DNA of 63,809 nt, the filler included, from Klebsormidium nitens (lineage: Eukaryota > Plantae > Klebsormidiophyceae): assembly GCA_000708835.1 (NCBI GenBank). It is 6 parts of 6 records of this genome, joined end to end, with 100 filler letters (N's around TTAATTAATTAA, not from the genome) between each part and the next. Parts side by side here need not be neighbours in the genome. Positions count along the whole stretch, not along the records: positions 1 to 21,457 come from DF237911.1; 5 more parts are not named here. One strand, written 5' to 3'. The notes under the pieces were generated by a model that saw nothing but the letters and a program-made list of their open reading frames with translations, did no database searches and was not told the DNA's origin. Of the stretch, positions 3,758 through 21,277 are shown piece after piece. Position numbers and translations under genes: made by a program. Positions within the stretch are counted from its first letter, which is position 1. Each line of letters starts with the position of its first letter.

Positions 3758-6700
3758 ATGGGCATCCCTGGGTTGTGGAACGAGCTGCGGCCATATGGCC
3801 ATCGGACCGACGTCACAGCTGACCTCAGCGAGCGCGTGAAAACCCTCACGGACCTCCAAGGGAAAATCCTGGCAATCGATCTTTCTTTCTGGATATGTGA
3901 AAACGTGGGCACTTATAACCACCCAGTTATGGGGCGGTTAAGCGACGCCGTGGCGAAACCACACCTGCGCAACGTGTTTTATCGCACCGTTAAGCTGATT
4001 TCCAGGGTGAGCATTACTAGGCCCGAATCCTTTCGAACCACCTTGAGTAATATTTGTTAAATGCATCTGGCTTTGCTTTGAATGAGAGGCCCAGCCTATG
4101 GTCACAGAGGCTGGCTTTGCTTTTAATGAGAGGCCCAGCCTATGTTCACAGAGGCGGGCGCTTATGTGTCGGAAAGTCATCGGGCTCAAGTTCATGGAAA
4201 AGAGTTGCATTTTCGGAGGTTTGAGACGGTGGCTTGTTGTCTTGTTGTCAAAGAACGAGCTTCAAAACCAGAAGGTCATAGAGTCTGTAAGATCCTCCTG
4301 ACCCGGCTTCCATCTTGGGCATATGCTCTCGAGGCCGTGATAAATGTTTGTCGCACGTTCCACTTCACATCTGCAACTCAGTCTCACATACAATATTCTC
4401 TCAGTGATTCAGTCTGCAAGATCAATGTTGGAACTCACCCGAAGAGCGCACTTTTTTGGCTCAGTAAGCCGCTTTCCCAGTCTTTCAGGCAAAGGCACCT
4501 TTTCTCAGCCCGCCATTTCTCGTTTTCGTCAACTCCTTCTTGTAGAAAACCTCTTGTCTTCACAAAAGAAACGAAAGAACCAACAAGAAAAGGGAAATTT
4601 TCTTTTGCAGGTGGGCGCCCTGCCCGTGTTTGTGGTCGACGGGGACGCTCCCTCGCTCAAGATGCAGACCCGCCTGAAGCGATACCACGCACAGCACCAA
4701 ATGCAAGCCCCGGATCGCGTCGTACGTGCGCAAGGGGGCGCCGTCCGGCGGAACTATGAGTGGGAGTATAAAGTGCAGGAAACGGTGGTAAGCAAGCAAA
4801 GCTTCCATTATTCCCTCAAATCCTTTATCTCTTTCTCAAGCGATTCTTTTCTTCGTGTTCCATTGCCTTCTCGCTTTCCCCCGTCTGAAATTTGCAACTG
4901 GGCGCCTCAGACTCGGCAGCTGGCGTGAATGACTCAAAGGCCCTTAGGCCGGAGAAGGATCGTTCTCGAGAGTAGGTATTGTAAGCTCAGGGGCAGGGTT
5001 AGTATGGTGGTTAGGGTGGGTACGGGTGCGGAGCGGGTGATTATTCGGGTTTAGGTTCTTGGTCTTAGCTTCGTTCTTCTATAACTTGAGCTTACTATAA
5101 CCACCATACCGATTGTCCGGTTGGGCAACAACTCAATATTCTGTGACTTGCCCAGATTTGAGTGTATAACAAATTCCAATTTCAAATTTGCAAATGATTT
5201 TGCCCCATTAAAATACAGAATAAATAATAGTAAATGAAGCTGCCCAAATACCGTAGCACACGAGATTAATCATTGGGCAAAACTCTGCCCAACCGGACAA
5301 TCGGTACGGTAGTCTAGAGAAGTATCGGAGAAGGTCCTGCGGGGTAGAAGAGAGTAGGTTTCTTCTCAAACTGCGCCCAGTTGAACGCTGCTGGACACGT
5401 GGAGAAAGGGGAAAAAAAGGAATGGTAACAATTCTCGAGAGACGTCTAGCGATCCATATCTTGCAGAACGTCCTCCAGCTTTTCGGCCTTCCAGTCGTGT
5501 GCGCCCAAGGCGGGACTAGCTGAGTCGCACAATAACCGCTGCTGTCGACGAACAGATTCCCGGGAAAGGGACCATCTATGAAAAATATCTACTTTTCTCT
5601 CTCTGCAGGACCTCCTCCGGCTTATGGGTCTCCCGGTCATATACGCCCGCGCCGAGGCCGAGGCGCTCTGCGCGCAGCTGAACGCCGCTGGACACGTGGA
5701 CGCGTGCGTCTCTCCGGACAGCGACGCGTTTCTGTACGGCGCAAGAACGCTGATTAAAGAACTAGCGGCGGACCTAAAAAAGCCGATCGTTGACCGCTAC
5801 GAAGCGGTGGAGATCGCAGAGAGACTGGGGCTGAGACGGGCGCATCTGGTGGCTTTGGCGATGCTCTTGGGGTGCGACTTTGATGAGAAAGGGGTCGAGG
5901 GATGCGGGCCGAAGCAGGGGATCAAGCTCGTGAGCGGGTTCAAGGAGGACGAGATTCTTGATAGGTAAGGGGGCCGGTTGATCGTGATTGACCGTATTCG
6001 AAGCTGCACATTCGCCGAGTTACAGGGGCACGAATCCAGGTGTTGTAGAATTGCATGAGTGCAAGGAACAGAGGGGTTCGCGGGTATCAGGTCTAAGCGC
6101 TCGACAAATTGCAAACAATCCTCTTCGCTCGTATGTTTTCGGAACCTGGATTTGCAAACAGGACTGGGCTCTGACGACAGGGCATCGGCAGTTGGAATGG
6201 ATTGCCAGGTCAATACAGATTATGCCTTGATCAGATTCCTGCGTCTTTTTCAATATGCTTTAGTCAGAACAACGTCAAAAGCCACCTCCACTCATAGAAG
6301 TGTGAGCTCGAAGAGGCGACAGTAGGTCGAGGATTGAATGCGACTTTGTCGGAATTCGCAACTTCAAGCCGCTTCCGCTCTTTGGAACGACAAGAAGAAC
6401 GTTTGCGAGCACCACGGAAAGCCGATAAATACGTTTCATTGCTCCCAGGCTGCGCGCTTGGGGTCGAGGAGAGGCGCCAACCGACGCCGAGATGTTCGGC
6501 GAGGACGAACCCGTCGGCCAATCCCAAAGCGCCACGTCATCCAGGCCTATCCATTGTGGCACGTGCGGGCACCCGGGGAAGGTCGTGGAGCACCGGAAGG
6601 GGGGGTGTGACGGCTGCGGAACTGAGGGGGGGGAGTGTACAAAAAAGGGACGGGGTTTTCAGTGCCAGTGTGAATGGTGCGTGCAGGTAGGAGCCTCTGT

Positions 6701-9700
6701 ACAATCAAATAAGAGAGTTTCGATGCCTGTCAGACCGATCTCAAACGTCAGAAGAATTACAGAGCGACAACATCCAACGTCAAACGTTTTGACACCTAAC
6801 CAGTTTTAGGTGCATTTCGGCTCATAATTCTGGAGTGTCGTCACTTCTTCGCGGGATTCGGAGGTCCGGTTTGCAGGAGTTACCGGGCACACGAGGTGCT
6901 AGTCTCCTGGTCCTTGCCCTCGAAAGCACGGTCTGAAATTGGTTTCAAACTTTGACCGTGCGCCTGAAATTGTGAACTCGAAGCTTGAACCTTAGGCCAG
7001 ACGCGAATCGCTGACACTCAAAAGCTGGAACTAGTTGTGACGTCAGATCCTGACCGCGCGTCTGAGAACTCGGGTCCAGATCTCTTGATGCAGATTGAGC
7101 TATTATGGGTGCGGATATGCAAAGGCAAGCTCTTCCTTTCTTATCTTTCAAGAGAGCAATAGTACGATAATGGAATCCAAGTCTGACGTATATCTTGTCG
7201 ACGGTGCAGGCCCGTGTGGGCAAGGCGCGGCAGAAGCAGGAGTCCTGGTGGGGCAAGATCTGCGACAAGATCGCGCGCCAGTCCGACTTCCCAAACGAGG
7301 ACATCATCGAAATCTTCATGCGGGACGATCCACGTAGCCTGAGCCACCTGAAAGGCACGTGCCTCTTTCGAATTTTCATGACTTTTGGGCAAAAAGCAGG
7401 AGCCTTGTAAACCGATTCTTTCTTTCTTTTTAAGTCGCCGCAGTTGAGCCGGCACTGCCAACGCCGCTCGGCGTTGCATGGCAAAAGCTGGTGGGATTCT
7501 CGATGTTCGTCTATGCTGGCTCGCTGGCCGAAAGTGGGACCACCATTTTCCCACTCTGGTGCCTTGCTCGTTGCTTCTGAGGACAAAGATGTGGGTCTCT
7601 GCTGTTGCGCAAAGTCTTTTCTCAGGTTTTGGTAAGGGCCTCATAAACAAAGGCTGCCATAACAGTCGCGAATAGATGATTATAACTTTGCGGCCATAAG
7701 CGCTTCCCATAAGCGTACCGCCACTTACCCCAGTTTGTCCATTGTACCCTGTGTCCCGGAACACCAAAAGAGAGCGCATGCAACTGAAACCGCGTCTTGT
7801 CTGTTTCAGGGGGGCAGCGTCCCCTGGACCAGCTGCTGGTGTGGGACCCCCCCGACCTGGACGGATTGGCCAAATTTATGACGGCCAAGTGCGAGGAGTC
7901 GGAGGAGCATTGGCAGCTCAAGGCGCTGCCGCTGGCGACCGCTCACTATCTATCGCAGGTGGGCGGGGTCGCCGCTTTGCGTTTTTGCACGATTTTGTAG
8001 AATATTGCACATTTTGTAACAATTTGCACGAGCTTGTACAATTCTGCCGCTGGCGACCGCTCACTATCTCTCGCAGGTGGGTGGTCGCCGCTTGGCCATT
8101 CTGCACGATTTTGTATGGTTTTGCACGTCTTTGCGGAATTTTGCACGATTTCGAAGAATATTGTACGATTTTGTGGAGTTTTGCACGCTTTTGTGGAATT
8201 TGCACGATTTTGTGGAATTTTGCACGATGATTTAGGTAATGCTGCATGAGGTTATCCTAGTTCTTGACCGTGGAACTGCGGAAGCTAGCAGCGGAAATCC
8301 TGCTGGCATCAAGATCTCGTTCGTTTTATCCTTCAACTCAAACCTGATTGCGTTGCTTGCCATCGCGGCGTCGATCGAAACTCGTCGGTTTCCGATCCTC
8401 AACTCGCAAATCCGGTTTCTGAATCCTGATGCTGAAGACCTGTGGTAGCGCAACGTCATACTGGAATCAACGCCCCAATATCGGTAAAGCTAACTTCACT
8501 TTGTTGCAAATCAAGAAACGGTCTCGCAAAGTTCGGGATTGTGAATTGACGCCGCGATGAGAAGTTTGACGAAAACAGCTGTAACACTCGTATGGGGTTC
8601 TTACAGTTCACTTTGTTCATCTCAGATTATGGCGGCTCGCCTCCATCGGGAAATGGTTTCCGACCTCGGGTGCCTGCACCGAGTGGGAGCATTGGTCGCA
8701 CCTCCAGGCTTACAACAGCTTTCACCAGACGACCTGCTTCTTGACTCCAGCTTCAAACCCAGCAAGGTGGAGCGGATCAAGGTGGATGCCTCGGAGGCCC
8801 TGTATCGGATACAGTGGCGGCGCGTCGCAGGCGATTCGGCAGGTGGGTACCCGATACAAGGCCTTATCAATCTCCAGATGCGGGTTTGAGCAAGAGTGAA
8901 TGAAGATAAGTGAATGAACACAAAGTGCATGAACACGAGAAGAAGAAAACGTCGGAGAACACGAGTCGATGAACACGAGTGGACGAACAGTGGTTTCCTG
9001 GCCCAGTGTGGAAGGTGCAAGGTACGCTACTCCGGTTTGGGATAAGTCGGACCCCTGCTGAATCTACACGGAAGACAAGTGTAGGCTATAGCTTTCTAAG
9101 TCCTCTTGACCGTCGTGCAGCAATGCAGGTTTCTTCTGGAGGATTGTGACAGTGCTGAAATGACTGGAAAGAATGTGAACATCTGGTTTCTAAAGCTCCT
9201 GCGAACAACGGACCGATACCTACACCTAACGATGCAGGGAGGAGTGATGTAGGAACAAACCAGGCGGGGGGAGGCCTTGTTTCTGACGAAGCCGACGGGG
9301 AGGAGGAGGCAGAAGAGCGCGACGAGGACGGGGAACAAGGCCCGGAAGCGGACGACGAGGGGCCGAAGAAGGTGGTCCTAAAGTGGAGGAAGGCCAGCGG
9401 GTTCTCGACCGACGAACGGAAGTTGATGGTGCAACTGGCGTTTCCGACCGTGGCGGGACCGTTTGAAGAGGCGTTGGTAAGCGAATGGATCTGGTGAACG
9501 AATCTTGGTTGGAACTCGTTCTTGAACAGAAACTTGGGACGCGAAAAGGGTCTTGTCGTTTCCAGACGTGGCGGAACCGTTTGAAGAGGCGTTGGTAAGT
9601 GTATTGGAATTGGTGGCCAGGTTTTCTTTGTTAACAGGACGGGAGGGGATCGCTTTCGAGTGGAATCCCGTCTTGTGCATGCGGTTGAGAGAGCAGGGAA

Positions 9701-12101
9701 TCAAGTTGAGAAGGAGGAAGTTAGGTCTGCGGACTCTTGTGGGGCATATCTGCGGAGTTTGTTTTTTCGATCGAGAACACGTCGTTGTAGAAAAAAGAGG
9801 GGCGTGTGTCTGGACTGCAGAAACCAATGCAGAGTCCGTTTCTGAATGTGGCCAGAGCAAGATTTATCCGTTCGCTCCTTCCGCAAAGCCTCCAGCCTTT
9901 CTCAAGAATCCAGTCAAAGACACCTCAACCTGTGCGGGTAAAGTATCACTTCTCGTCGCTCAGCGATTGACGATGGCTTACATTCCTTGACAAATAAAAA
10001 TATCTGTTCGTTTGCATCCAGCCTAAGTCTCGCTGTGAGCAACATTGCCGGCCACGCTGCAATGAAGGTCTCCCTCATCAACTGGATTTCAGAATGTCGA
10101 TTGCTGACGCCAGCAAGACGTCAGCGGGCTGACGACGTTTTGTTCATGCAGGCTGAGAAGGTGCGAGCCAAGGCGCAGAAGGAAGCGGAAAAGGAGGCGC
10201 GCAAGAAGGAGCGCGAAGAGAAGGCGGCTCTGAAGCAGACCAACATCAAGTCGTTCTTCGTCACCAAGAAAGGGGGAGCGAGGTTTACTCTGCCAACGGG
10301 GGGTGCGTTTCCCGCTGCGGACAAGGGGGGGCCGGAAGGGGGTGCAAATGGGGGGGCGCAAAAGCTGGCTGCAGACCAGGGGGGAAGCGAGACGACAGCC
10401 GAAGTCACAGGGGATCCCTTCCGTTCCTCTGGTGATTCGATTCGCACTGGTCTTTGGCCTGGAAGCAGCGACGGAGAGCCGTTCCGGACGTCCGGAAAAC
10501 GGAGCGATATGTCTCTTCGCGGAGGGGACGGATCGTTTGCAGAGGACGACGCTGGGCCGTCCGATCGGATCGATCAACGGACGCAGTTTGACCGGTTCAA
10601 AGATGCGGGAAGGGGCTCCGAGGAATTGGATCAGCTGCGAACAGAAAGGGGGCCATTCGCGCAGAAGAAAAGACAGGGGCTTTCGCAACTAGTGGAAGAG
10701 GATGCGGACGCTGCTCCGGACGCTCCAAAACTAGACGCGGACGCTTCTTGGGTTGCTCCACAACTAGGTGCGGACGCTTCTTCGGACGGTCTCCCGGGCA
10801 CGTTCGGGCGGCGCGCCTCACTCCTCGAACAACTGCCGGAGAGCCCGTTCATGAAGCACCCCGAGCGGCGCGCGGGCTTCGAGAAGCTGGCGGAACTGCA
10901 GCGGCGGCTCGCGACGCTCGACCCGGGGCACGGGGGAGTGACGTCAGCAATAGGTGGGGTCGCGTCAGCAGGGGGTGCGGGTGATCTGGCGGCTCCGTAT
11001 GTGCACGGCGTGGACAGGAGAGAATTGAGGAGAGAAAAGGGAAAGGAAAAGTTGGAAGAGCAATTTGAGGGGAGGCGGTTGGTGGAGTTCTCCGAGAACG
11101 AGAGCGAAGGGGAAGGTGTTGCTGATGAGGTGCGGAGGAGAGACACGGCGATGAAAGGAGCTCGGAAGACAACTAGAGGTGGGACAGAGTCCTCGGTTGG
11201 TTTGTTGGGCACATGGGCGATGCCGGTGGAGATCGACGACTCGCCCCCGCGACGCACTCGTAAGGCGACACGTGTCGGCGACTCGGACCGACCGACCACG
11301 CCTGTCCGGAGGAGCCCGTCGGAGGGATCCCCCGGGCAGGGCTCGCCCGTGACTCCGTCGAAACGGCGCGCTGAGGACTGTCTGGTAGAACATACCCCGC
11401 CGAAGAGGCTTGCGGATCAGTTCGACAGAGTGAAGGGTGGTGAGGAGGCGGTTGAAAAGTCGTCAGCGAAAAGGCTGGTATTTTCGAGCGGGTTGAGTGG
11501 GGATTTCTCGGCCCGGGGGGTTGTTGCAGGTGCGAAGCAGAGTCAGGGGGATGAGGTGAAGGGGTTCGCGGGAGGTGGTGGGAATGAGAAGCGGCGGGAA
11601 AGAAGTGATAAGCAGGATATGCGGGGTAAGAACCGGACAAAGGGGTCCGATATAGAGGATTCGTACCAGGCAAAGCTGGCTGGGTTCGTTCGAAGAAGTG
11701 AAGGGACGTCGCAGCGGGACGAAGGGCGAGCCTCGGGTGACGCGACTGCAGCAACGCTGCCGGTTCAATCAGAAGGGATAGACACTGATGCGGGAATTCA
11801 TTCTCGGAACGGGGGTGGGGCAAACGAGAAAGTAGACGTGAAGCGGCCATTGAACCGACCGGCTGAGTCGAAGGGGAAACTGTCCGTCGAGGTAATAGAC
11901 TTAGCATCGTACGACGAGGAAGAAGAGGTTGGCCAAAAGACTGGGGACTCGGGCCGGGGGAATGGGAGTATAAGTGACGTTGGCCCGGGGCGGTTGGACA
12001 GGAGCGTTGAAAACCGCAAGCAGGAAGGTAGACAGAGCGGAATTCCGGCACGGAAAGAGCGGCGGGAAGTGCTGGAGATACGGAAACGGAGGCCTCGTTG
12101 A
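3758..12101 (+). CDS. GEN1: Holliday junction resolvase GEN1 (XPG/Rad2 family, plant type)
   Basis: Exons are 3758-4006, 4611-4787, 5609-5964, 6449-6686, 7210-7333 (or to 7354 with a GC donor), 7810-7958, 8626-8842, 9238-9476 and 10152-12101, all phase-compatible. Motifs: XPG-N (MGIPGLW...LAIDLSFW, PVFVVDG), XPG-I (EAEALCAQLN...DSDAFLYGA), H3TH (LLGCDF...GVEGCG), and the plant-GEN1 Cys cluster HCGTCGHPG...CQCEWC followed by WWGKICDKI...FPNEDII. The C-terminus is long and disordered. Confidence 0.92.
5104..5309. mobile_element. MITE (Tc1/mariner-pogo-like) in GEN1 intron 2
   Basis: 24-bp TIRs (CCATACCGATTGTCCGGTTGGGCA at 5104-5127 / TGCCCAACCGGACAATCGGTACGG at 5286-5309, 1 mismatch). The right flank is TA and the left flank CA (probably mutated TA). 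The interior is AT-rich with repeated TGCCC motifs. Confidence 0.75.
7978..8232. repeat. ~10-bp-unit degenerate minisatellite in GEN1 intron 6
   Basis: About 20 variants of ATTTTGCACG/ATTTTGTGGA/ATTTTGTACG, interrupted by a copy of the exon 6 end. Confidence 0.8.
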
Positions 12102-13598
12102 GCCGCAGTTCTTGGGAACCCTGGTCGTACTCGACCGCGGGCGAGAGAATGATAAGCTCTCCTTCGGAACAATGTGCGCGAGAACTCTTTTGAAGATTCC
12201 CTACACGAGAAGGCTATCTTTGCTTGTGAAAGTCGGTTGTGAGCCGGCAGACCTGAGAATGAGCATACCAACTGGCTCCACCTTGCATTGATTGAGCTGA
12301 AGGAAGACCGCGGCAAATTGGCGCATACCGTCAATGCTGACAGAGATCCATGCATGTGGACTCGTGTGTTCAATATGCCACTGGCATCAACCGGGTGCCC
12401 AGTAGACTCCGAGTGCATTAAGCGCGCTGGGACCAGCTTAAGCTTCATGCATGTTCACATGCACATTTGACAGTCTGCGAGCGAATTAAAACCTTACGCG
12501 ATATTGTCCCTCCACGAAAGCAGCAATTACTAGCTGATCATGGCACATGTCTTCGATCGCGGCGCCGATCCGACAGTCAGTTCAATCTTGAAGCTAAGCC
12601 TGGGAATCAAGCCCAATACTACAATTTCATTGCAACGTGTGTGCTGGCCCTCTATAGTGCATATGTGACGTTGAGCCCGCTACAATCAGCTCATGAATTG
12701 CAGGCCGCCATGGCCTGCTGGCATATATATGCTGAACTTGTATATACGGGATCAAACGGCGGTGCAGGCCAAACCGACCGAGGCGGCCCGAATTACTTCA
12801 AGTCTGGTTGAAAGCGCCGTGCAGCTTGGACCATCTTGAGGTGACGTCACTGTGACGTTGCCCATATACAAGGGGTCAAGCGTTTGATCCTTCTCGTCAA
12901 CATCGCGGCCATGCCGTTTGGTGGGTGAGCAGGGGAAGGACCACCAAATTGGCCTCGCGTATAGTAGTCCCGGTGTCTCCAGCTGATGAGCCCGGTGTCT
13001 CAGACGGTTCCCAATTTTTTTTTGCGCCGTGCGGCTTGGAACGAGTGCACCCGGCCTAGCTGCTGTCCGTATGTTCGGCCCCGGCGCGCCCGCATACGTC
13101 GAGCCAGCCTATGTCAATACTGATCGGACTCGAACATCCGCGGCTGCAGCCGAAAACGGACATGGACATGCAGAGACCGGACATCATCATTGCTAGCGAT
13201 ACGAGCGCGTCCAAACAGATTGCAACACATCTTTAATTTTTTAAATTCGAAGATTGCAACATGGACTGAGTCATATTTTCGAATATTACCCGATGTCTGG
13301 CCATTCCAAGTGCACACGAGCCGTGCATGTCGAACTGGTGGTGGCGGCGTAAACTCTTAGTTGAGCCAGATCACTGCCCGCGACGTAATTGGTTCTGTTA
13401 CGGCCTGACATATCTTCTGAGTCCGGGACATCTATAAGCTAGAAACCGAACCTTTGAACCGTTTGACCTTACTCGGCGGCATCCCTAATAAATGCAACCA
13501 AGCGTCGTTTGACGAAGCGATGCAGAAATCTCTGCAGCGGCCACATATGAATGTCCCAAATCACACCCCTTTTCTAGAGAATCGTCGCAAGTAAAGTC

Positions 13599-16500
13599 TC
13601 AGGCCTGCCCGCGCTGTTCAACCGCCCGCTGCATGCACTCGGGGAATGGGCCCCGGAAGAAGACGTGCTCGGCGATCTCTACGAGGTCACTGCCCGGCAG
13701 GTCGACCACGGCTGCAAAGAAAACACACGGGTTAGGACTTAACCCGACAGCTTAGGTTTGGTGGCATTGCACCCCGATCAAAATCAAAGATATGCCCGGT
13801 AGGTCGACCACGGCTGCAATGGAGAGGATACGGGTTAGCGCTTAACCTGACAGCTAGGTTTGGCGAAGTTCTGAATTAATCACGGGCAAAGACCTTCAAC
13901 AGGTTACTGCCCAATAGGTCGACCACTGCGCTCCAATGGAGGGAACACGGGTCAGCGCTTACCCCGAGAGCTGAGAATTGCTGAAGTGCCGTTTTGCATT
14001 ACGATCTTTACGAGGGCACGACAAAGGTTTTCATTCAGAAAGCGGGACGAAACGCCAAGTGGGCTTGACAATTTTCTTGTGGGCGATTGACCAGCGTTTC
14101 AAACGTTCGGCACTTCGAGTTCGACCAAGTATTATCCGGTTTTAGGGAGCGCTCTGAAGAAAGTCGCATCCCAGAAGAAAAAGCTGAGAAAGAGGGACCC
14201 AGACCGTGAAGAATGAGATTGAAAAGTCCGACGACGTCATTTCACGATTTTCCAGTTAGTTACCAAGCAAATAAGATGAAAAACATCAAGTCGATAACGA
14301 AATCTTGGGTTGAAGAAAGAAGCAAGTCAACATTGACGAAGACGAAAACACAAAGGGTCAGAGGACGAGAAGAAAGAAAGCCGGAACAGGACACGCATAG
14401 CAAGGCTGGCCGCCTCACAGTCGAGCTTCATGACGACCGTGTAGTCCCGGATGAAGATGACGGTCGGCACATTCGCCACGCGCAGCGCGGCCGCGAGCGC
14501 CTTCTCGTTTTCCGCGTTCAGCTTGACGACCTGAACGGAAGCGGAATATATGCGTGAGCAAGAGCGGAATCGCTTGCGGGGCCGAGAAGGTGGGTTGACT
14601 GGTGAATGAGACAAGTCGCATGCGTCTACCACTCGCCTTGATGACCTGATGAAATGAATAGGAGCCGTCATCTGACACAAGGATCATAAGTGTACGCCTG
14701 AAGAACATGGGAAGAAAGTCAAGGCCAAAGGCCTCACGATGATGACTTCTGACAAGCTCAACCCGTATTGCTCCGTTTCCTTTCACTCGTGGATGTGGGA
14801 ACGCTTGGCAAAGAGGGGCGCTTGTATCGGGGTTACCGCGATAAGACCACTTTGGCCAAGGCTGATCAGTATTGTACAACTGTCGCGCAACCCACCGGCC
14901 TGCAAAGTGCTCTTTGCAATCTGCTCTATCAAAACAGCCAGGAATAAGGCAAACGCACGAATCAAAGAAGTATGTGGCAACCGTCTCATCCAAGCGATGA
15001 CGTCACACGATGCGTCATTAGCACAGGATGAGGGACCTACCCTGACGCGCTCGCCCATGGTGCGCGCGAGCGTGGCCACTTCGACGGCCATTCTGCGACA
15101 GGGCCTCGCCCTGCAGTCAAAGATAGCAGGCATCTCTCAGCAGATGTTCGGGCCTTGTAAACTGGCAGGTCGGCGTACCCAAGCCTTATTGCTGGAAAGC
15201 GGCGGTCCACATCGATAAGATGCCAGCCTTGATTTGTCTGGACAAAATGTTATTATCGAACTTTGACTGTTTGTTTGTTTGGGGAAGGTGTTCCGTCATG
15301 GTCAGACACGTGACCTGCCCGCTCGCTTTCGCGGCACGCTCAAGTGCACCGAAAGGAGTTGAATCTTGGGTAACCAATCTTTGATCTGATCGCAGGTCAT
15401 AAGGTCAACAACTAGATGCAGTTCAACAACCAAACTGGTTGAATGTAAGGCTTCGACCAACACTGCTCGCCACCTCGCAAAATGCTCAATTACGAGCGGG
15501 CTCAGACAGGTTCGCTTCCAACTTGTCACATAGGATGTCACATCAAAAGGCTGGCGGAAACGGGAAATTGAAAACGTTGGACAGCCGTGTGGAAAGAAGA
15601 ACCACGGAGCACGTGGCAGTAGGATCGCTCACCACGTGGCAAATACCTCGACAACGAGCGGGCTCGGGTCTCTCGTGACGTCTTCCCACTCATCCGAGGA
15701 AATCTGCTGCACAAGGGGCTGGTTAAACGGGTCTTCCTCCGGGGCCACATTCGCCAGCTCCGCCAATTCCGCTAGCTTCATCTCCTCGCCCTCGAACCGG
15801 ATCGGGCCGTCGGTAGGGGGGACAGTTGCCTGCAAAGCGGGTTAAGGAACTGGGTTGAACTCAAGTTACAGGGGTGCCTAAAGCGTGGCAGCAGATTGAA
15901 GACAATCTTAAGCGTAGGAGTTCAGTGCTTCGCCTGCGTTGTTGAAATTTACCTGACCTACCGACGGTGGTAAAAGTTAGATGCTCAATTGTGGGGCATA
16001 CTCCCCTACTTGGATAGCGTTGCTGCTAGGTAGCACACAACTGATGCTCGGGACAGACCTAAACGGAAACCTCTGAAGTCAACAATTACGTGCTCTGCAG
16101 AAACCATACCTACTCAAACGCTTCAAAAACCCCTCCTGTTACCCGGCAGTAATGTAATGCTGTTTAGAATCAAGCCAGGTGACGTACACGTCTGCATTGT
16201 ATCCTATGGGAAAGTAACACCTCATGAAATTACAGAAGCTTCGCTCTCACCTTCTCGACCACGGGTCTGATGTCGTCATCGGGAATGGGGTCCACCTCCC
16301 CGCCCCAGAAAGCCTCGCTCTCAAACTCCCGCAACTGCTCCTTCAGATTGGCCGTCACTTCCTCCTTATCCAGGATCCCGTCCTTGAAAATGTCGTCCAG
16401 AGTCGCTCCGCTGAGCCCCAGCGTTTTCTTGAGCTCCTCAGACTCCTCAAGAGAATTGGTATCGTCTGCGGCTTCGTTGACGCCTGTCCGGGGACTCGAC

Positions 16501-19500
16501 TCAACATCCGACGGTGCAGTGCTTTCTACAAAAGGAGCAGCGGGCTTTGGAGCGAGGGTTTCCGAAACAGGGGGAACAATTGAGGGCTCGGCGGGCCCCC
16601 CCGGGAGACTTTCTTGCTGGAGATCAGACCCCTCACTCTCTTCCTCTTCTTCACTTTCCCTTGTCCTGTCCGTTTCTGCTGCGGACGCGCTTTCTACGGA
16701 CCGATTCTCCGCCCACTTGTCGCTCGCCAGAATCTGGTTAATATTCCGTCCCCTTAACCCCATTTGCCGCAGCGTTAACCCCACCGCCGCTACCGGAAAC
16801 GTCACCCGCCGCCGCGCCAGCGTCCCCGACCGCTTGGACAGCTGATCGCTCATGAAGTTCCCAAACCCGGGTTTGAGAAGCAGGTCGCTCAAACCCTCCT
16901 CCTCTAACCCGGCTTCCTCCAAAACAGGTTTCAGCGACTCAAACTGCTTGTAGGTCACCTTCGGAAGCGCCGCCTCCAGTTCCTTCGCCCACTGCTTCAG
17001 CTCCGCCTGCTTCATCTCCTCGTCGTCCGAATCTTCGTCACCGTCCGCAGAGTCTGGACCGTCCGACGGCTTCGGACCGGCCGCTTTTGCCGCGTCCGAA
17101 GCTTTCAAACCGTCCGATTCCGCTCTATCCGCAGCCTTCGTTCCATCTGCACCGTCCGAACCCTTCGGACGCTCGAGCCGCCGCTCCAGCGCGTCGTGCA
17201 TCGCCCGCAGCCGCTCCTTATGCTCCGGATCCATCCGTTCCTTTCCGTTTCCGGACGGTTCCGGTGCGTCCGATTCGGCGTCCGACTCCTCCTCCTCTCC
17301 GTCCGAAAAGCAGTCCTCGTACTCCTCTTCGCCCCAATCAATCCCCAGATCCTCGTCTTCCTTCAGGTACGTGCTTGCAAACAAGTCCTCACCTGACTCC
17401 GCCGGTCTCTCCTGCGTTTCTCCCCGCGCCTCGTTTCCGCTCTTCCCACTCCTCTTCCGTTCCTTTCCGTTCCGCTCCGGTCCGTTCTGCTCCGTTCCGC
17501 TACTGCCCAGACCGCTCGACCCGGCGGACCCAGCCCCAGAAACCCTTTCCCGCTTCTGAGCTCGGGCCGCTTTGTCGTTCAAATTGCCACTGTCCGAACG
17601 ACTGCCAGACTCTGTGGCACTGTCCCGCCCCGACTGCAGAACCGCCCGGTACCCCGGCTCGCCCGCCATCACCGTAAAGCCCTCCGAGAATCGCCCGTTA
17701 TCGTCCCCATTCTCGTTCGGAGTGTCACTACCAGAAACTGCCTCTTCTGAACCCCCGGCACGCACTTCTCCGCCAAACGCCGCCCCTCCCTTACGCCAAT
17801 CAGATCTTGCCGTACCCGCGCCTCCCAAACCTTCCGTCTCTTGCACGAGTTCCGCTTCCACGATTTCGCCGTCCGAATCTTCGTCCAAATCGTCGTCGTC
17901 GTCTGAATCGCTGTCCGAAAGGTCCGAGTACTCTCCCTCGAACGGCTCCATGGCGGACTCCCAGTCCGGCAGCTCGGGTTCCGGCTCGAGTTCGTCGACG
18001 GAATCCGTTTCCGCTTCCTCTTCTGCGGCCCCATTCAGGGGCTTCCCGTCACGGCTGATCTCGCGCCCTTCCTCGTCATAGACATGGCGCGTTTCAGTGA
18101 CCTTGACGCCCTTCTTTTCCGCGTAAGTAAAGAGCTTTTTTCTGCAAGTCGAGAACAGATTGGACGGGAATGGATCAGATCAGAAGGTTGCGTGACTCCC
18201 CTCGAATTGGATTCAGTCAGCTTCATGCCCTTCTATCCGAGCTCCAAAGGCCCCGGCTGATGCAAGCACGGATGTCGGAGTGTAAATTCTTAAGATTGAT
18301 TCATGTCCAGAATTTACAAGATTGGATCCATCCTCCTATACGTGTAAATGAGACCTTCTTTTTGGATGAAAGGTGAGGCGCTGACATCAACAAAGAATTA
18401 TTTCTTCTTGCAGAGTCAAGCAAGGATATCGACAGGCACAGCGTTTCAGATTCCGCTTCTCCTTAAATACCGTTGCCTGCATCTGCCCATCGCGATATGT
18501 TGAACCGTGTATTCCCTCCTGACCGTCGAGGAGATTCTGCGGACTTTGTAAGCTGACCAGGGCTATAGTGTTCTACCTCGTGACTAGGCGGATGGCATGC
18601 TTTTACTACCCCAAGCTGTTCTGCTTTCGGGACAATTGAATGACGACCCCAATCACGTTTAAGACAGCAAGCAGTTGAAATGCGTTAACCTTTCTCGGCG
18701 CCCTACTTCTATCTTAGGCAATCGAAGCCTCAAAGCTTTCCAAATGATGCAAGCCCCGGGCACCTACTTCCGATACTTGCATGACAACAACTCAAAAGAA
18801 CCAACCAGATAAACAAGACAGCCCAAGGGGAATCGGACAGAACTCAGACAGAACCAAGCGCTCACCGGAAAATGTAGTCCTCCAGCTGCGCCTTCTCCTT
18901 CTCCTTCTTTGCCTTTTCCTCCGCCTCTAGTTCCCGCCGCCACTTGGGCGTCTGCTGGCCCGCCACCTGGTCGTACCCCCAATCCACCACCTCAACGTCT
19001 TTCTCCGTCTGCCGGTCCCGCGCTTTCTTCAGGTGCTCGAGCAGATCGGGCGGCAGGTCGTCCACTTTCATCGCGAACTTCTCCTCTTCGGAGTTCTTCT
19101 CGGACTCGGGCTTGTAGTTCCAATCGGGGTCGCCGAACTCGTCGATGGGCACCGTCCGAATGGTCTCCTCGGACGATTCGGATGCGTCAGGTGTCTCTGA
19201 CGTCTCCGAGTTTTCAGACGCCGCCAACCGCTCTGACAATCCCAACTCCTCTGACGCATCTAATGTGACCGGCCTCGTATTTGCGCTGGCAGTCTCGGGA
19301 TCAATTGAATCCAGAGCACTCACTTCCGAGTGCGATCCTTCTTCTGCTGCCGCCTCCGCTTGCATTCGCTTTCTTTCCTCTTCGTCTTCATCCCCTTCTT
19401 CTTCTTCTTCCTCCTCTTCTTCCCAACCCTGCTTAGCAGCCCACATCCTGAACTCCGCTTCTTCCCTCGCTTTCCTCGCCTTCACTTCGCTTGACCACGT

Positions 19501-20421
19501 TTCCGGCCCTCCCCGCCTTCCAATCTCTGCCACATCCACCGTACCTGCAAACGGGGGGGGCAATTCCCCCCTGTCGACTGCCCCCTGCCGCTCCTTCTGC
19601 GCATAAAACTCCCGCACCTCCCTCGCCCTGTCCATGAGCCCCACCGGAAGCATCGCCACCGCTTCCGCCGCCGTCAGCTCCGTGGGGGTGGCGATCTCCA
19701 CGTCCGGGAAGTCATCCCCCTCGAAATCGCCGCCGACCTCAGCGACGACGTCATCGATCTCGTCCTCCCCAATCACGTCCCAGCCGCCATTTTCATCCAC
19801 CTCCCAAGCCTGCTCGTATGCAGATTCTTGAGACTCTGCACTGCTCGACGACGCTTTTCCGCTGGCACCATTTGCAGCTTCTTCTGCAGCTCGCGCCCGC
19901 GCCATCGCTCTCTTAAGCACCGACTCTTTCTCGCCGCGGCTTTCATCTTCCCACTCTCCACTTCTAGTTCCCGGCGGCTGCTGCCAACCACTTTCTTGTG
20001 CCTCAATCCTATCAGCGCCGCCCGAACTGGACGCCCCACCTCCGTCCAAACGCCCACCGTCCGAAATGCCGCCTCCTGGATTTGCCCCCACACTCCGTTC
20101 TTCTACGAAACCACCCTCAGTCCGCCCCTCCGGCGTATCATCGCCCCGACTTTCAGCCGCTGTGACATTTCGCCCACCCCTGCTTTTTCTTGCAGTTCTT
20201 TGAAGTCGTTTTGCACCTGTCGTGACAGCTGGCAGCGCTGCTCCAAGGAACGGCGACAGGTGTTTGCATTGCACGTGGATTCCATGATGGCCCTTGAGGA
20301 ATGCCTGGAAGCCTGGGAAGCCCGACGATGGAGGTGGTGCCGAAAAGTCACAGCATTGCCGCCTGCTGGACGGAGAGGGCGCTGCAATCTGGAAGCGCCC
20401 GCACAGCGCCGCCTGCGCCAT
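13599..20421 (-). CDS. Plastid-targeted ~1312-aa acidic protein with C-terminal non-canonical thioredoxin fold, MRL7/RCB/NCP-like
   Basis: Exons on the minus strand are 20421-18866, 18141-16251, 15829-15633, 15110-15041, 14530-14419 and 13711-13599. They total 3939 nt (1313 codons), with GT-AG junctions all in phase. The N-terminus is Ser/Arg-rich and transit-peptide-like, followed by ~1100 aa of D/E-rich low complexity. The C-terminus reads VQQISSDEWEDVTRDPSPLVVEVFATWARPC...ALAAALRVANVPTVIFIR...DLVEIAEHVFFRGPFPECM, matching the recalled RCB/NCP pattern (EWEE.V.KD.SPL.V.V, LVSALKVSVFPEIIF, FFYYGAAKPPCL). Confidence 0.85.
13690..13990. repeat. Three tandem ~102-115-bp copies spanning the last acceptor site and start of the last exon of the Trx-like gene
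   Basis: AGGTCGACCAC...CACGGGTTAG...TTAACC.GACAGC recurs at ~13699, ~13801 and ~13916. Confidence 0.85.
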
Positions 20422-21277
20422 CGATGGGGTTGCTGTTTTAACTTATATGTAATCTGCGTTAATTTCTTCTTCAAGCAAGCGTTGAGGTCACATGGTCGCC
20501 CTACTACCCAGCGACAGGTGCCATTGAAGGTGTTCCAACATTTTCCACGCACACTTCTGTCGGTGTGAAGGAACTTGAAGTTGAAGTTGAAGTTGACGAG
20601 GCCTGACGAAAACTTTGATCCCCTGTGGTAATGGTTGCCTCCCTGATAATGGTAGTTACTGAACTTCTTAGCTATCGATGTTACTAGAATATTGCCCTGT
20701 TTCTACATAAATTCGCATTTATCGTCGAAACCGCCGGATTGGATGCCGCGCGCTCTGGCAATTTTGCATTTAGCGACAGAATCTTGTGACGGATTGTACC
20801 TCACGTCAATTCTATCGAACTGAATCTACCGCCATTTAAAGGGTCCGTCGAAAATGACTACTCGGGACGTCGTGTTAGGGCGAAAGTTTTGGTACATATC
20901 TGCTCAACAGGTCGCTGCAAATATCCAACCGAGGCTCAAGGCGGAAGTAAACTTAGGATTGTGGATTGACCGTACAGTTTACGGACTTGGAGAAACAAGT
21001 TAAACCCTCAACCAGATCTACATCGACCGGGTTGTTCCTCCCGGTGTGAAGTGGAGCCAACCGACCACTACTTTATACTTCAGTTTCTCAATCCCGGTAG
21101 CTAAAGTCGGTCCTTCCTCCCACGCTTCCGGCCATCGTGGACCGCGTGGGTTAAGAGGCAAGTTCAGTATCACATCGTAGATTAGTTCTGCCCGGAATGT
21201 GACAGATTCACTGAGCCCTCAGGTTTCTGCTCTACGGTCCCCGGGCTTGACCCCCGTGCAGCATATTGCACATTCGG

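Follow-up and report, generated by a model that had tools for sequence, protein, structure and literature searches.

A thioredoxin-like domain with a W-A-R-P-C site ends a large acidic protein of Klebsormidium nitens and may be related to the RCB/NCP module of land plants

RCB and NCP, which are found in both plastid and nucleus, connect nuclear phytochrome signalling with the assembly of plastid RNA polymerase; reports of the family they form have until now come from land plants alone. Here we describe an expressed gene of Klebsormidium nitens whose predicted product resembles both. The gene lies on the minus strand of a 63,809-nucleotide stretch (the window, filler included) made of six joined parts of assembly GCA_000708835.1, in which positions 1 to 21,457 come from DF237911.1. 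Like RCB (also MRL7, SVR4 or AtECB1; At4g28590), the window protein appears to end in a thioredoxin-like domain without a dithiol, and it is acidic with a transit-peptide-like N-terminal start; like NCP (MRL7-L or SVR4-like, At2g31840; PDB 6NE8), it would have a non-catalytic thioredoxin-like fold. SVR4 and SVR4-like are about 20% acidic (PMC4154389); in the window protein as a whole, Asp and Glu account for 22.9% of residues and Lys and Arg for 11.7%.

Differences from RCB show when the window protein is set beside the RCB sequences of Arabidopsis and about 45 other angiosperms (supplementary FASTA of PMC12484188). RCB has about 331 amino acids (aa) against about 1,312 here. The RCB site reads Y-K/N-R-A-S/A, without Trp, Pro or Cys, whereas the window protein has W-A-R-P-C. 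From the site to the next strand RCB is seven residues longer. It also has C-P-Q in place of the canonical V-P-T of the window protein, and Leu at the buried-Asp position, where the window protein keeps an acid. The basic PRKPRRGRRSEA motif of RCB has at best a faint counterpart (RK.R.GR....AA, aligned by eye).

Plastid thioredoxins provide a second standard of comparison. In TrxZ/PAP10 (8r5o_O) the strand preceding the active site ends ..(F/Y)ATW, as in the window protein, and x- and y-type plastid thioredoxins are likewise of the ..ATW-C-G-P-C type. Core length is canonical in both, and the window protein retains their Pro, second Cys, Lys and cis-Pro. Their attacking Cys, however, is intact, whereas the window protein has Ala in its place and so would be incapable of dithiol chemistry. 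The EWE and PSP of the first block and the C-terminal tail, present in the window protein, are absent from plastid thioredoxins, which are small free enzymes and not, as here, the end of an acidic protein of about 1,300 aa. Half-site proteins in which the first Cys is replaced and the second kept, such as PDILT (S-x-x-C), are binding or chaperone-like; they belong to the secretory pathway and are unrelated.

An earlier sequence-only reading of this DNA had joined four small exons at 13599-15829 into a splice chain reading W-A-R-P-C, with the nucleophilic Cys lost and the resolving Cys kept. Transcript-like Logan contigs from four runs of four studies, aligned over 13450-19400, bear this chain out. 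Minus-strand GT..AG joints at 13711/14419, 14530/15041, 15110/15633 and 15829/16251 are identical in all four runs, as is a fifth minus-strand joint at 18141/18866, and a single contig of 4,411 nucleotides (X11) carries all five. Being spliced, the aligned contigs must derive from RNA. They differ from the genomic DNA by no base and no indel, and their exon boundaries are those derived from the DNA alone, in which four short open stretches of the minus strand are bordered by good splice sites. All four small exons therefore exist and are joined in an mRNA that reads W-A-R-P-C, the depth of spliced transcript ranging from 20 to 147.

On the minus strand, 13599-15829 forms the 3′ end of a single expressed gene with six exons, which runs from an ATG at 20421 to a stop codon at 13599. 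The boundaries originally given are therefore exact for the four small exons and fall short of the whole gene, to which a 573-aa open reading frame (ORF) and a 518-aa first exon also belong. All exons are on the minus strand and the reading frame is open through the six of them. The coding part of exon 1 (18866..20421; ORF 18862-20421) begins with the ATG and comprises 518 codons plus two bases of a split Arg codon; exon 2 (16251..18141), very acidic, contributes 630 codons and holds the 573-aa ORF, which stands separately in the ORF track. Exon 3, or exon A (15633..15829), encodes a linker, helix 1 and strand 1; its end (...EWEDVTRDPSPLVVEVFAT) reads ...PSPLVVEVFAT, followed by the TG of a split Trp codon. 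Exon 4, or B (15041..15110), supplies the G that completes this Trp, then A-R-P-C and helix 2. Exon 5, or C (14419..14530), reads VVKLNAENEK...VPTVIFI... and covers strand 2, a helix, the cis-Pro and strand 3. The coding part of exon 6, or D (13599..13711), accounts for the last strand, the last helix and the tail (...DLVEIAEHVFFRGPFPEC...), with the stop codon at 13601-13599 and a 3′ untranslated region extending below 13450. The in-frame codons of the six exons (518, 630, 66, 23, 37 and 36, the 66 of exon A already taking in the split Trp codon) add up to 1,310, and the split Arg and Ser codons bring the encoded protein to about 1,312 aa. No spliced product of this gene, nor the window's own protein, was found in collections of 5.8 billion and 1.84 billion proteins, where the gene is represented only by prokaryote-style ORF calls on genomic contigs of its relatives; a BLASTp-based survey would therefore miss it.

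The Trp codon of the site is divided by a phase-2 intron (TG at 15634-15633, G at 15110) and is followed by codons for Ala (15109-15107), Arg (15106-15104), Pro (15103-15101) and Cys (15100-15098). The mRNA thus departs from the canonical W-C-G-P-C dithiol site in having Ala at the position of the attacking Cys, the second Cys being retained. The Ala codon, GCG, is two changes away from a Cys codon. Editing of this codon at the RNA level was considered and rejected: the RNA contigs show no base differences and hence no sign of it. The possibility that cDNA might reveal a different exon chain restoring a CxxC was also looked at and is ruled out: all RNA contigs read W-A-R-P-C, the gene span contains no such alternative, and no exon with a thioredoxin-type CxxC is present on the minus strand within 13560-20600.

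Searches of Pfam and PDB, run exon by exon rather than on the joined domain, bore out the thioredoxin fold that had been proposed from the sequence. The exon order is collinear with thioredoxin, although each exon taken alone gives only a weak match (E 0.03-1.5). The last 26-29 residues of exon A align to the strand preceding the active site, both in TrxZ/PAP10 (8r5o_O 77-107, ending ..FYATW) and in 5jy5 (3-29), and the language-model neighbours of this exon are thioredoxin clusters, which are generic leads. Exon C aligns to positions 53-85 of the Pfam Thioredoxin family PF00085 (E 0.03), its 14.8 bits in the single-exon scan comparing with a gathering cut-off of 23.5; the other exons had no match in that scan. 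Against PDB thioredoxins exon C matches approximately residues 52-96 (E 0.14-0.4), the cis-Pro of V-P-T included. Counted by eye, 29 residues separate the Trp from V-K-L-N, which is the canonical thioredoxin spacing. Of the residues that support the fold, the domain has kept the Trp and Pro of the site together with its second Cys; it also has an acid where the buried Asp normally sits, the V-K-L-N Lys and the V-P-T cis-Pro. With the stop codon 36 codons past the last strand, the domain lies at the C-terminus of the protein. Taken together, the sequence makes a sound case that the tail is a thioredoxin-fold domain of about 113 residues with a canonical, plastid-type core and a replaced nucleophile.

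Word searches with exon 1, with exon 2 and with a 217-aa open frame containing exon A retrieved only three relatives, all as unspliced ORFs. One is in a Logan assembly (L001) and the other two are on separate contigs of a single JGI metagenome (L002 and L003, the first being the source of the 217-aa frame); their exons were located one by one with tblastn. Two metagenome scans found nothing. The splice sites are conserved in the three relatives, and so are islands within exon 1. Identity ranges from 83 to 91% in exon A and from 86 to 97% in exon C; exon B of L001 is identical to that of the window, whereas L002 and L003 read A-G-P-C; exon D of L002 is 81% identical and keeps the tail Cys. The tail is the best conserved part of the protein: over its four exons it is 84% identical to L002, against 51% in exon 2 and 42% in exon 1. 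Within 162 codons of the tail, 26 differences from L002 are non-synonymous and 42 are synonymous only, a pattern that indicates strong purifying selection on the tail exons.

The site itself reads W-A-R-P-C in L001 and W-A-G-P-C in the other two relatives. Trp, Ala, Pro (the residue preceding the site Cys) and Cys are thus fixed in all four sequences, from which it follows that the attacking Cys was lost long ago in this clade. Both the site Cys and the Cys of the tail are invariant in every relative for which the exon is available.

The likeness to RCB was computed on one 46-residue stretch of the Arabidopsis protein, compared with exon A. This stretch scored 16.4 bits with phmmer and 20.5 bits (E 0.0044, PDB-size Z) with an exon-A profile built from the four sequences. 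None of the 177,635 distinct sequences in PDB, NCP and many thioredoxins among them, scored above 12.9 bits with the same profile, so that the RCB stretch outscores every PDB chain by about 8 bits. A Smith-Waterman alignment of the stretch with exon A gave 61, compared with 23 +/- 4.4 for shuffled sequences (maximum 48); none of 5,000 shuffles reached the observed score. Exon A contains the first block of the family, (V/I)-(K/Q)-x-(I/L)-x3-E-W-E-x6,7-S-P-L-x-V-x-V-x3-(Y/W), and NCP (6NE8) shows the same signature, EWE followed by D.SPL.V.V...Y, with one residue more between EWE and SPL than in the window protein. RCB, NCP and the window protein thus all carry the EWE/SPL signature.

Alignment by eye extends the resemblance. 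Exon A shares V.(E/Q)I...EWE......PSPLVV.VF with Arabidopsis RCB (13 identities in 27 positions), exon C has 11 identities in 37, and RCB and the window protein have in common a tail, LV....H.(F/Y)(F/Y)....P.C, beyond the thioredoxin fold. The proposed likeness to RCB is thus upheld by computation for the EWE/SPL block, the matches in exon C and the tail being by eye. The same cannot be said of the site: it had been given as Y-K-R-P-K in RCB/NCP, which would have made R-P a shared element. Given the actual RCB residues, only the R is in common, and this R is G in L002 and L003, so that the Arg link to RCB/NCP is not conserved.

From these comparisons, kinship of the tail with RCB/NCP is likely, short of proven. 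We lean, by a little more than even chances, towards the view that the protein ends in a redox-inactive, binding-type tail related to the RCB/NCP module, in which the ancestral canonical core has been kept. The bolder proposal, that this is the first RCB/NCP relative from outside the land plants, namely a giant acidic plastid-directed protein that combines first-block and tail characters of the family with loss of the attacking Cys while retaining Trp, Pro, second Cys and the canonical core of a plastid x/y/z-type thioredoxin, is a tentative one, to which we give somewhat less than an even chance.

Several observations weigh against kinship with RCB and NCP. The excess in RCB score rests on few residues (EWE and PSP), which had been noticed before RCB was chosen for comparison. 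In its central part the domain resembles ordinary thioredoxins more than it does RCB, and the longer segment of RCB between the site and the next strand (36 residues) is not found here, where the length is 29. RCB and NCP are small (about 330-350 aa, with a transit peptide, a nuclear localisation signal and an acidic stretch), whereas the window protein, at about 1,312 aa, is some four times longer than either. Word searches with exons 1 and 2 detected no kin of the N-terminal 1,150 aa outside the clade. In the exon-by-exon searches, no exon matched 6NE8 at E<=10; even NCP (6NE8), a true paralogue of RCB, gives no more than 12.5 bits with the RCB stretch, and the failure of the exons to match that structure consequently says little. 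Similarly, the exon-A profile, searched against 1.84 billion proteins at E<=0.001, returned nothing except unspliced ORFs of close relatives, and so no land-plant protein, a weak negative since 20 bits is far below threshold at that library size. Finally, Yang et al. (2019, PMC6570768), in the study that defined RCB and NCP, detected no homologue of NCP in three algal genomes (those of Chlamydomonas, Klebsormidium and Micromonas), concluding that it “emerged in early land plants”. Our literature search found no later paper reporting an algal RCB/NCP homologue.

Some of the same observations would fit a plastid-type thioredoxin (x/y/z-like, of ..ATW-C-G-P-C ancestry) that degenerated independently and became fused to a lineage-specific acidic protein, its likeness to RCB/NCP being due to chance or convergence. 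The canonical core (Trp, Pro, second Cys, cis-Pro and the 29-residue spacing to V-K-L-N) speaks for such an origin, as does the fact that, among PDB thioredoxins, exon A matches PAP10/TrxZ best and shares its ..ATW ending. The top matches of exon C are ordinary thioredoxins and 6NE8 is not among them; the lack of detectable kin for the rest of the protein, and of any land-plant protein in the E<=0.001 search with exon A, point the same way. Independent degeneration does not, on the other hand, readily explain why the RCB stretch stands about 8 bits above every PDB thioredoxin with one and the same profile, nor why the EWE/SPL signature is shared with both RCB and NCP. The RCB-like C-terminal tail, which (by eye) lies past the thioredoxin fold, and the common overall plan, with a transit-peptide-like start, an acidic body and a non-catalytic thioredoxin fold at the C-terminus, also argue against it. 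On balance we regard independent degeneration as rather unlikely, while ranking it first among the alternatives.

Returning to the RCB/NCP-related tail, we picture its action as follows. Because the attacking Cys is Ala, the domain would not run the thioredoxin dithiol cycle; its most likely role would therefore be that of a module without redox activity that binds other proteins, offering them the surface of the former active site. The remaining Cys could form at most a single mixed disulfide. The domain would be an RCB/NCP relative still endowed with the canonical plastid-type (..ATW-x-x-P-C) thioredoxin core and, by analogy, might act in the plastid, perhaps on the nucleoid or on assembly of the RNA polymerase. 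Function, localisation and partners are inferred.

A different use of the remaining cysteine is conceivable. The domain could be a one-cysteine, thioredoxin-like sensor, redox-active in a non-canonical way, in which the site Cys, possibly together with the Cys of the ..P-E-C tail, forms regulatory or mixed disulfides. Invariance of both cysteines in the relatives with the exon available, and of the Pro before the site Cys, would agree with such a role. The second Cys of thioredoxins is, however, buried and poorly reactive without the first, which counts against a redox-active reading. An earlier study cited in PMC6570768 reported disulfide reductase activity for RCB/MRL7, a point in favour of a redox role; against it, Yang et al. 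(2019, PMC6570768) found no reductase activity for RCB or NCP. Such a sensor strikes us as improbable. As for a decaying pseudo-exon chain or annotation artefact in which W-A-R-P-C would be the remnant of a dead thioredoxin, an idea to which the decayed duplicate exon ends in the introns (signs of local duplication and decay) lend some colour, it has next to no chance of being correct: a pseudogene is excluded by the spliced mRNA, present in every run at the depth of the rest of the gene, and by strong purifying selection with splice sites conserved in three relatives, the frame being open over six exons.

Ahead of the tail, an acid-poor start is followed by approximately 1,150 residues of acidic sequence with short conserved islands. 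Among the first 95 or so aa of the protein, 4 are acidic and 13 basic, and Ser, Ala, Thr and Arg abound, so that the start looks like a transit peptide (acid-poor and Ser/Ala/Arg-rich). Pfam and PDB searches with the N-terminal 1,150 or so residues gave no match. Islands encoded within 16251-20421 (minus strand) that are invariant in the four genomes include KGVKVTETRHVYD.EGREISR, LGIDWGEE.YEDCFSD and KPGFG.FMSDQL.KR.G, as well as GLRGRNI..ILASDKWAE and DDLPPDLLEHLKKARDRQTE. None of these islands matches a known domain, and the acidic sequence around them is fast-evolving. The last 40 or so residues of exon 1 in the window (DWGYDQVAGQQTPKWRRELEAEEKAKKEKEKAQLEDYIF) are outside the same open frame in L002 and L003 (alignment columns ~588-650); the frame break at DWGYDQVAGQQTPKWRRELEAEEKAKKEKEKAQLEDYIF suggests an extra intron or loss of a segment in those two sequences.

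The introns that separate the tail exons carry duplicated pieces of the adjoining junctions. Three tandem copies of the exon-6 acceptor, each with the first 20 or so nucleotides of exon D, lie at 13691..13972 inside the last intron, next to exon D, with a period of about 102-117 nucleotides (the first unit showing 96% and 67% identity); the outermost acceptor, 13711, is the sole one used in the RNA. In the intron that splits the Trp codon, 15465..15503 is a decayed copy (77% identity) of 15627-15665, that is, of the end of exon 3 with its donor. In the two more distant relatives, L002 (9725-11833) and L003 (9617-11717), the same intron repeats the end of exon A, followed by a GTATG donor, six to seven times, and the exon-B acceptor, followed by an “AGPC..” start, three to four times. 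Such copies could have arisen if exon-intron junctions were duplicated in tandem again and again. Intron sequence at 13682-14448, 14537-14946 and 15368-15621 is covered by low-depth contigs (depth 3-9) of the same runs, most simply explained as unspliced precursor RNA or DNA carry-over. The neighbouring gene, at 3758-12101 on the plus strand, is of the XPG/GEN1 structure-specific nuclease type: its first exon, at 3758, is XPG_N-like, and 5624-5968 is an XPG_I exon; a long low-complexity ORF at 9987-12101 is probably part of it.

Should the likeness to RCB turn out to be mere convergence, there would still be a conserved, expressed and previously unannotated acidic protein of 1,312 aa that has a half-dead thioredoxin tail and is restricted to a small clade. 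If, instead, the kinship is true, the non-catalytic module would be older than land plants, contrary to the published view of its emergence, and the finding would point to an enzymatic ancestor of RCB and NCP. A relative outside land plants with half of the catalytic site would provide an outgroup for the family and a concrete class of ancestors, the plastid ..ATW-C-G-P-C thioredoxins. It would also offer a testable order of events, in which the attacking Cys was lost first, followed by loss of the Trp, Pro and second Cys and gain of the helix-2 insertion.

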